DNA of 64,000 nucleotides, taken from positions 31,124,001 to 31,188,000 of the forward strand of contig NC_043007.1 of assembly GCF_006345805.1 (NCBI RefSeq), in the 5' to 3' direction. A program made the translations under genes and the position numbers. The notes below the pieces were generated by a model. It ran no database searches. It was not told the origin of the DNA and worked only from the letters and a program-made list of their open reading frames with translations. Origin of the DNA: Octopus sinensis (Eukaryota). This document shows, piece after piece, positions 27,273 through 28,222 of this stretch; within the stretch, counting starts at the first letter, position 1, and every line of letters starts with the position of its first letter.

Positions 27273-27354
27273 CCATTATTGCTTTTCTCCGTGAAGCATG
27301 TGGTTCTTGGGTGTAAGACCACTCAAAATCTGTCCTAGAAACTTTGGCACCCAT
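27273..27354 (-). CDS. DEGS1: Sphingolipid delta-4 desaturase, coding exon 1 ([27 protein letters not shown] + 1 nt)
   Basis: Manual minus-strand translation matches the DEGS N-terminal domain (MGxxVSRxDFEWxYTxxPHAxRRK). Ends at donor G|GTAAGG, phase 1, 82 nt. Too short for the ORF track. Gly2/Ser6 fits an N-myristoylation pattern. Confidence 0.95.
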
Positions 27355-27771
27355 AGTGTTACAGAATCTGCTAAATCCTGGTGGAATTTCATGAAAGAAA
27401 GGAAAAAAAAGTTAAATGGGAAAAAAATAAATTCGTGCGTTAAGAAACGAAAAGTTTTAGATGTTAGATGTTGTAATTAAAAATGGTGATAATAATAGCG
27501 ATCAGAGAAGGGAAGACGGACCGGATTTAATTTACTAACCGTTTCATTCAATGGATGAGTTCCAAGTGATGGACAGAAGAAACTGCAAGTTAATAATTAC
27601 GAGCGAAAATCAGCAGCAGCAGCAGCAACGAAGTCATGAATATTCATTAGCTGTAGTCTGTGTATGTGTGAGTGTGTTTGTGTCTGTGTGTGTCTGCGTG
27701 TGTCACGTGGTCTTGTTAGTGAGATTCCGACTTCTGTGTAGCATAAGCGTCATAGAAAGAAAGCAGTCAAA
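27355..27771. promoter_or_regulatory. Bidirectional promoter and 5' UTR interval shared by DEGS and YY1
   Basis: 417 bp between divergent ATGs. CpG-retaining; contains (CAG)n, a GT-rich microsatellite and an E-box GTCACGTG at 27702-27709. Confidence 0.8.
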
Positions 27772-28222
27772 ATGGCGTCGGTTATAGGATCAGAAGTGGA
27801 GATCCAAGAGGTTGAGGTGGAGTCCATCCCCGTTGAAATGCCCATCGAGACGGTGGAAACCACAGACGATACAGTCGAAGTGCAACCCATGATTGCTCTC
27901 CAGCCATTACCCGAAGCGGCCCAAGAAGAGATTGTTCTGCAGACTCGTGAGGAGGTGGTTGGTGATCCGAACCTCGTGTATGCTGACAGCATCCCCGTAC
28001 CAGCTCCAGAGATTGAAATATCCACAGAAGAAGCAACCATCACCCGGAAAGGCAAAGGTGGCAAGAGACGAGCCAATAAATCACGAAATATGATATCGAC
28101 ATCAGCTGTAAATTGTGGAGAACTGACGCTAGACACTAACTCTGCTACAAAGAAATGGGAACAAAAGCAAGTACAGATTAAAACTTTAGAAGGCGAATTC
28201 TCAGTAACAATGTGGGCTACAG
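27772..28222 (+). CDS. YY1: YY1/pleiohomeotic exon 1 (acidic N-terminus plus REPO domain [22 protein letters not shown])
   Basis: ORF 27772..28230 with the diagnostic REPO motif. Donor ACAG|gtttgt, phase 1. Confidence 0.95.

Follow-up and report, generated by a model that had tools for sequence, protein, structure and literature searches.

Neighbouring gene pairs that keep a 5′-5′ orientation and a short spacer over great evolutionary distances are a described class, the CAMPs (Irimia et al. 2012, PMC3514665); as characterized in the main text of that survey they are non-paralogous neighbours shared by distant phyla, mostly oriented 5′-5′ and closely spaced, with flies and tunicates named as exceptions. 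The HSPD1-HSPE1 pair cited there, the textbook example, is an ancient head-to-head arrangement with a sub-kb spacer that presumably occupies one nucleosome-free region. Here we describe a comparable pair in a 64,000-nucleotide stretch of the Octopus sinensis genome (RefSeq GCF_006345805.1, contig NC_043007.1, forward-strand positions 31,124,001 to 31,188,000; hereafter the window), in which DEGS on the minus strand and YY1 on the plus strand diverge from start codons 417 bp apart. By its arrangement DEGS-YY1 is a member of the conserved 5′-5′ class, and it is split in flies, as expected from the exceptions that the main text of PMC3514665 allows; unlike the survey as presented there, we can trace its conservation to the content and position of individual motifs. 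The main text of PMC3514665 does not mention the pair, although the supplementary list may include it. Supplementary lists aside, we found no paper that names a DEGS-YY1 pair. The products of HSPD1 and HSPE1 work together in one complex, and their genes lie less than 1 kb apart in humans, whereas DEGS and YY1 are functionally unrelated, lie tens of kb apart in mammals, and are no longer paired in amphioxus.

The same two gene families are also neighbours in human and mouse, where two papers give the mammalian order (EML1/EVL)-DEGS2-YY1-SLC25A29. An initial annotation of the window, made from sequence alone, had equated the octopus genes with vertebrate DEGS2-YY1 and given the order EVL-DEGS2-YY1-SLC25A29; the published order agrees, and the equation holds at the level of gene families. 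Vertebrates differ from octopus in having two DEGS genes rather than one, and human DEGS2 and YY1 at 14q32.2 are divergent and tens of kb apart rather than 417 bp.

We consider it probable (roughly 0.7) that DEGS and YY1 form a 5′-5′ pair of at least bilaterian age, that their promoters lie back to back in one open island, and that the pair has been retained mainly because it is a nearly unbreakable target. The promoters look separable to us, with an E-box that may serve both genes.

Gene models were built by tblastn with human DEGS1 and YY1 queries followed by manual reading of splice sites, and this bears out the start codons that the initial annotation had placed at 27354 (minus) and 27772 (plus), as well as the spacing between them; the outer limits of its region of interest, 27273 and 28222, are precisely the exon 1 splice donors of DEGS and YY1. 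The DEGS product is complete (323 amino acids in 3 coding exons), identical to O. sinensis XP_029642377.1, and scores 77.6 bits against Pfam PF08557 (Lipid_DES, cut-off 23) and 87.6 bits against PF00487 (FA_desaturase, cut-off 29.7); it carries the HxxxH/HxxHH/HxxHH boxes as HEIAH, HLEHH, and HNEHH, and begins MGAKVSR. Exon 1 is 62% identical to amino acids 1-29 of human DEGS1 (an approximate query), and an 82-nt first exon recurs in all other loci compared. The protein is thus a predicted sphingolipid delta4-desaturase (DEGS/DES1/ifc). Vertebrate DEGS1 starts with an N-myristoylated Met-Gly, and the Met-Gly of octopus DEGS matches it. The database name of the octopus protein is DES1-like, and a single degs gene is found in Ciona and amphioxus but two in jawed vertebrates (PMC10240347), the invertebrate chordate gene being of degs1 type by NCBI naming; octopus DEGS is most likely a single invertebrate-type gene, co-orthologous to DEGS1 and DEGS2 and no specific orthologue of DEGS2. 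The plus-strand product has Pfam zf-C2H2 and zf-H2C2_2 domains, is 100% identical to proteins named YY1 in O. sinensis and O. vulgaris, and in tblastn comparison with human YY1 shows 93-100% identity in the fingers and 91% in the REPO segment; with four fingers and a REPO-type segment, it is by sequence a YY1/Pleiohomeotic transcription factor. In every other animal locus compared, the first residues of the orthologues align with the octopus DEGS and YY1 ATGs.

The age of the pair was assessed by locating DEGS and YY1 orthologues in annotated genomes and re-checking every fetched locus by tblastn; look-ups were confined to the best 120 matches, among which the survey covers bilaterians, with cnidarians, sponges, and vertebrate loci lying outside them. 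The genes are head-to-head in i) the cephalopod O. vulgaris (418 bp from ATG to ATG); ii) the limpet Patella vulgata (373 bp); iii) the bivalve Dreissena polymorpha (216 bp); iv) the brachiopod Lingula anatina (205 bp); v) the annelid Owenia fusiformis (522 bp with a corrected YY1 start); vi) the priapulid Priapulus caudatus (2430 bp); and vii) an invertebrate represented by a marine metagenome contig (L027, 217 bp). Seven protostome lineages therefore share the 5′-5′ orientation, with spacers of 205-522 bp except for Priapulus, and adjacency as such extends over Cephalopoda, Patellogastropoda, Bivalvia, Brachiopoda, Annelida, Priapulida, and Hemichordata. The orientation has its exception in the hemichordate Glandiceps talaboti, where the adjacent genes are in tandem, with 5.25 kb between the 3′ end of YY1 and the DEGS ATG downstream of it. 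Less direct indications come from hit tables and identifiers: DEGS and YY1 locus tags are adjacent in Sinanodonta and Nucella and three apart in a millipede (tags only); the Strigamia genes have consecutive UniProt accessions; and both genes are on scaffolds of equal length in Lottia, Aplysia, Capitella, Tubulanus, Mactra, Argonauta, and O. bimaculoides (lengths only). For Owenia we dropped the annotated YY1 start, which gives a spacer of 462 bp, in favor of the conserved start (MAS...) 60 nt downstream, so that the deposited YY1 model is probably 20 amino acids too long. The annotated ATG coincides with the first three bases of the palindrome ATGAATATTCAT in this region (L008 9526-9538).

Elsewhere the arrangement has been disturbed. 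No YY1 was found in the 10 kb upstream of Ptychodera DEGS; amphioxus YY1 has other flanking genes, and YY1 and DEGS are on different chromosomes of one amphioxus assembly; in Haliotis the genes share a chromosome but are more than 10 kb apart; and hit tables place them on different scaffolds in three insects. The initial annotation had called the pair ancient and had looked to non-cephalopod molluscs and invertebrate chordates for adjacency. Its antiquity is upheld by the head-to-head pairs of the brachiopod, the annelid, the priapulid, and two mollusc classes besides cephalopods, and by adjacency in a hemichordate; the prediction of adjacency outside cephalopods succeeds for Patella and Dreissena but not for Haliotis or amphioxus. 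Since other lineages keep the pair, we read the amphioxus break as a lineage-specific loss. From these comparisons the head-to-head pair appears to have existed at least in the protostome ancestor, and since a hemichordate and vertebrates likewise have them side by side, an origin in the bilaterian ancestor or before, with several later losses or remodellings, is most likely.

Spacers of different phyla cannot be aligned, yet they have short motifs in common. In an unbiased count of shared 8-mers, with 200 dinucleotide shuffles as background, 5 of 8 lineages have TCACGTGA/CACGTGAC no more than 150 bp from the YY1 ATG (shuffle maximum 3), 5 of 10 have ATATTCAT no more than 350 bp from the DEGS ATG (shuffle maximum 4), and the YY1 core AAAATGGC is among the top-ranked shared 8-mers. 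CACGTG precedes the YY1 ATG by 56 to 69 nt in seven independent lineages (octopus -68, Patella -60, Dreissena -64, L027 -59, Lingula -56, Priapulus -59, and amphioxus -69), including the amphioxus YY1 that has no DEGS beside it, and other species carry GCCAT-type motifs 14-28 nt before the YY1 start codon. Exact copies of ATGAATATTCAT are found upstream of Haliotis DEGS and in Owenia, and Patella, Dreissena, L027, and Priapulus have half-sites. Which motif belongs to which gene is indicated by the species whose pair has come apart. In Priapulus a ATATTCAT half-site and a CRE have stayed with DEGS, at about 130-225 bp, and the E-box with YY1, at 59 bp, so that the expanded spacer amounts to a natural separation of the promoter halves; the spacer (L009 ~7700-9700) has grown by the insertion of GT/GC-rich microsatellites and of AT repeats, which now part the DEGS-side motifs from the YY1-side ones. 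In Haliotis, where YY1 is more than 10 kb away, DEGS retains an exact palindrome at -242. Because most motifs go with one particular gene when the two are parted, each gene would seem to have its own proximal module.

The octopus spacer (Table 1) is consistent with this. The N-terminal extension MTSLLLLLLIFARFSRFCNT of DEGS isoform X1 maps exactly onto the leader exon and bases 27377..27355 of the minus strand, and this computed RefSeq leader reaches 27637 or beyond, to within 134 bp of the YY1 ATG. With the ATGs only 417 bp apart and the leader modelled at 27637..27601, the two transcription start sites may lie less than 1 kb from each other, as in divergent promoters, although distant alternative first exons are conceivable. 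The extension itself (20 amino acids, with poly-Leu from a CTG repeat, its ATG formed by the last two bases of the palindrome and the next base) probably represents an upstream frame within the leader and not a genuine isoform, because the conserved Met-Gly start would otherwise be buried. Exact matches to the octopus DEGS and YY1 proteins came from genome records, and none from assembled RNA runs. The ratio of observed to expected CpG is about 0.8-1.35 only at ~26.0-30.7 kb, against 0.1-0.8 (median 0.38) in the rest of the window, from which we infer a single germline-unmethylated promoter island between methylated gene bodies. The palindrome resembles a variant MORE site bound by homodimers of POU factors (PMC4576985), and by the same kind of resemblance USF/TFE/MYC-type proteins are candidate binders of the E-box. 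Footprinting of the O. sinensis spacer against that of O. vulgaris was powerless, as there are 2 differences in 417 bp compared with about 1.2% divergence in the flanks.

We therefore picture the octopus promoters of DEGS and YY1 as lying back to back in one unmethylated, presumably nucleosome-free island, each with its own proximal motif module, the palindrome and E-box modules being about 55 bp apart. DEGS transcription would start at or just past the POU-type palindrome and run leftward through the small spliced leader; YY1 transcription would start in the ~60 nt between the E-box and the ATG, and YY1 would be controlled further by a cluster of its own binding sites some 330 nt into intron 1. 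Linkage would be maintained by the tiny breakpoint target together with purifying selection on both promoters, with no need for co-regulation: most likely it persists because nearly every breakpoint would damage one promoter or the other. Several observations weigh against so tidy a scheme: i) the TCACGTGG E-box lies a few bases from the palindrome upstream of Haliotis DEGS, and since Haliotis DEGS keeps it, the E-box is not cleanly YY1's alone; ii) in the motif comparison the Owenia spacer has no E-box and the Lingula spacer no palindrome; iii) the deuterostome DEGS promoters compared (amphioxus, Ptychodera, and Glandiceps) contain none of the motifs; and iv) the DEGS leader exon is a computational RefSeq model.

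The strongest competing explanation, though in our view an improbable one, is selected co-regulation, in which one shared bidirectional promoter couples ceramide synthesis to a chromatin regulator, as the initial annotation had suggested. Very short spacers and 5′-5′ orientation have been kept in seven protostome lineages; the octopus motifs are merely ~55 bp apart; the E-box that stays with Haliotis DEGS hints at shared use; DEGS could feel YY1 autoregulation, given a cluster of YY1 sites inside the same CpG island; and conserved 5′-5′ pairs tend toward co-expression (PMC3514665). Coupling nevertheless fits poorly, because the pair has been separated repeatedly: it has dissolved in amphioxus and Haliotis, is tandem in Glandiceps, is on different scaffolds in insects, and has been stretched to 2.4 kb by repeats in Priapulus and lies tens of kb apart in mammals, a distance at which a shared core promoter would be impossible. 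In most of these disturbed lineages, moreover, the motifs go with one gene. We know of no functional link between the DEGS and YY1 products. The proposed coupling thus finds no support in a pair that is split, inverted, or stretched in six lineages or groups; as for the companion claim that the two promoters must overlap or be shared, abutting or overlapping promoters do fit a leader exon within the spacer and a single island, but the segregation of the motifs makes them look separable.

The first intron of YY1 contains the sole non-coding, non-repeat sequence of the window with blastn matches in other phyla (28511-28617): 82% identity over 103 bp in Lingula (E = 2e-18), 84% over 70 bp in Patella, 78% over 102 bp in Dreissena, 78% over 85 bp in Owenia, and 84% over 68 bp in Priapulus. 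The alignment shows invariant blocks with five GCCAT cores oriented R R F F R, and four of the five matches to ATGGCGG in the 64-kb window fall in one 49-bp stretch of it, where 2.1 are expected in the whole window. A GGGCGC[AC]GCCAT core is located 285-330 nt into intron 1 in 10 of 10 YY1 loci, including amphioxus and Glandiceps. Kim, Yu & Kim (2009, PMC2743690) showed in mammalian cells that a cluster of this kind, three to five YY1 consensus sites in mixed orientation within about 100 bp of the first intron, mediates autoregulation of YY1; the study reports it from vertebrates as well as Ciona, amphioxus, and sea urchin, found none in Drosophila pho, and placed its origin after the split of vertebrates and invertebrates. 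The octopus element resembles the published one in having about five sites of mixed orientation in ~100 bp of intron 1 and in sharing the core CCATGGGCGCCGCCAT with amphioxus, a species of that study. It departs from the published account in that an alignable cluster, known here from its sequence, is also present in molluscs, a brachiopod, an annelid, and a priapulid. These alignments indicate a bilaterian origin for the cluster and its loss in flies. In the literature we found no report of this YY1 cluster in protostomes, and the element may be more interesting than the gene pair itself. A scan of metagenomes with the element pattern returned 120 loci, 2 of which had YY1/DEGS matches (L027 being the useful one); the rest were taken as unrelated and probably bacterial.

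The position of the cluster invites a bolder proposal, that the ~1.3-kb block from the DEGS leader to the YY1 intron 1 cluster has been one intact cis-regulatory unit since the protostome-deuterostome ancestor, and that DEGS remains attached because its promoter uses chromatin that YY1 holds open through autoregulation. Its parts would be the POU palindrome, the E-box at about -60, the YY1 motif at the start site, YY1 exon 1, and the five-site cluster at about +300 of intron 1. We regard this as speculative, on a par with selected co-regulation; if it were true, sphingolipid desaturase output would track YY1 dosage.

Still less likely is a long-range block, in which enhancers of YY1 or of another gene lie within DEGS and make DEGS an immovable bystander. 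Adjacency has outlasted a change of orientation in Glandiceps and wide separation in mammals, neither of which is needed by a model based on promoters alone, and molluscs have a long first DEGS intron (9 kb in Patella and as much as 20 kb in octopus and Dreissena). However, blastn of the window against 11 loci from other phyla matched exons, microsatellites, and the YY1 intron 1 element, and uncovered no conserved non-coding block in the DEGS introns; and the DEGS gene is only 2.7 kb in Lingula and about 5 kb (at most 5.5) in Owenia and Priapulus, which leaves little space for embedded enhancers. Chance or convergence, by which the genes would have become neighbours independently in cephalopods and vertebrates, can point to amphioxus, Haliotis, and Ptychodera, where the close arrangement is absent, but is effectively refuted and not credible, because the same pair recurs in other phyla, with the same orientation and sub-kb spacing in three classes of Mollusca, in Brachiopoda, and in Annelida, the same orientation in Priapulida, adjacency in a hemichordate and in mammals, and common motif content and positions in the spacers.

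Table 1. Features of the O. sinensis window and related elements in loci of other species (locus handles precede the coordinates where these do not refer to the window)
Feature	Position	Strand	Remarks
DEGS exon 3	1620..1474	minus	TAA stop at end
DEGS exon 2	6843..6101	minus	holds the three histidine boxes
DEGS coding exon 1	27354..27273	minus	82 nt, amino acids 1-27 + 1 nt; ATG 27354-27352; donor GTAAGG
DEGS leader intron	27600..27378	minus	223 bp, canonical GT..AG, acceptor ...CACCAG; next exon from 27377, 23 nt before ATG
DEGS 5′ leader exon (modelled)	27637..27601	minus	RefSeq isoform X1 (XP_036363203.1), read as MTSLLLLLLIFA(R); donor GTAATT
ATG-to-ATG spacer	27355..27771		417 bp, 37% G+C, TG-rich tract, (CAG)5 at 27611-27625
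Palindrome ATGAATATTCAT	27636..27647		perfect; single copy in window; overlaps 5′ end of leader exon
E-box TCACGTGG	27703..27710		CACGTG core 27704-27709, 68 nt upstream of YY1 ATG
YY1-consensus motif AAAATGGCG	27769..27777	plus	straddles YY1 start codon
CpG-undepleted stretch	26000..30700		spans first exons of DEGS and YY1
YY1 coding exon 1	27772..28222	plus	451 nt, amino acids 1-150 + 1 nt; ends FSVTMWAT; donor GTTTGT
Conserved non-coding element	28511..28617	plus	YY1 intron 1; five YY1-consensus sites, four ATGGCGG at 28557-28605
YY1 exons 2-5	35600-35756, 39405-39462, 41566-41724, 42820-42989	plus	REPO-like segment and four C2H2 fingers
YY1 cassette exon	37423-37506	plus	alternative, 28 amino acids, precedes finger region
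Extra 3′ YY1 exons	43235-43297, 51014-51055, 54076-54099, 55841-55876	plus	annotated isoforms
~400-bp repeat copies	~9149-9557, 12088-12510, 12862-13285, 14553-14957, 17725-18206, 18747-19150, 40110-40504, 51237-51638, 58156-58523, 59198-59567, 61946-62356		
Intron 1 element in other loci	L002 ~8815-8915, L005 ~8985-9085, L006 ~8980-9077, L008 ~8645-8737, L009 ~6735-6839, L010 ~10740-10800, L013 ~10750-10800, L027 ~790-900		
FHA + dsRBD-like gene	L006 14311-22723, L008 19249-24914, L009 16951-25486		kanadaptin-like by domain content

The window has a G+C content of 37% and introns that span several kb, and Rfam and tRNA scans of its 64 kb gave no matches. Octopus YY1 has a splice donor where human YY1 stops (...HAKAK), followed by small extra exons spread over 13 kb, out to 55876; these encode TRCADELNLMQGIGICSYDDG..., with alternative ends CEEEADDC or NPPKFEMRMMAS, and no counterpart of the post-finger exons or of the cassette exon was seen in the YY1 loci of other phyla. 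Directly downstream of DEGS, in Lingula, Owenia, and Priapulus, is a convergent gene of 760-910 amino acids with FHA and dsRBD-like domains; as judged from the annotated loci, YY1-DEGS-FHA is a three-gene block common to three protostome phyla, and the octopus window ends near the 3′ end of DEGS. An interspersed repeat of ~400 bp, probably an element resembling a short interspersed nuclear element (SINE), is present in at least 11 copies in the introns of DEGS and YY1, with 80-93% identity to copies in the O. vulgaris locus (L001). Just past the DEGS stop, at 718-1373, long stop-free stretches on both strands have a near-equal translation (QLLKCVCVCV...), which indicates an inverted duplication of a microsatellite-rich segment.

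The DEGS-YY1 pair is a gene order that has outlasted more than half a billion years, including the scrambling of coleoid genomes. Evolution has also perturbed it naturally, splitting it in amphioxus and Haliotis, inverting it in a hemichordate, and stretching it in Priapulus and vertebrates, so that the pair provides a handy test of 'shared promoter' against 'too small a target'; and the POU palindrome, the E-box at a fixed distance, and the YY1 sites are short, concrete targets for mutation. The intron 1 cluster would join the few non-coding elements that can be aligned across protostome phyla and, if it autoregulates in protostomes as well, YY1 self-regulation would date to the bilaterian ancestor.

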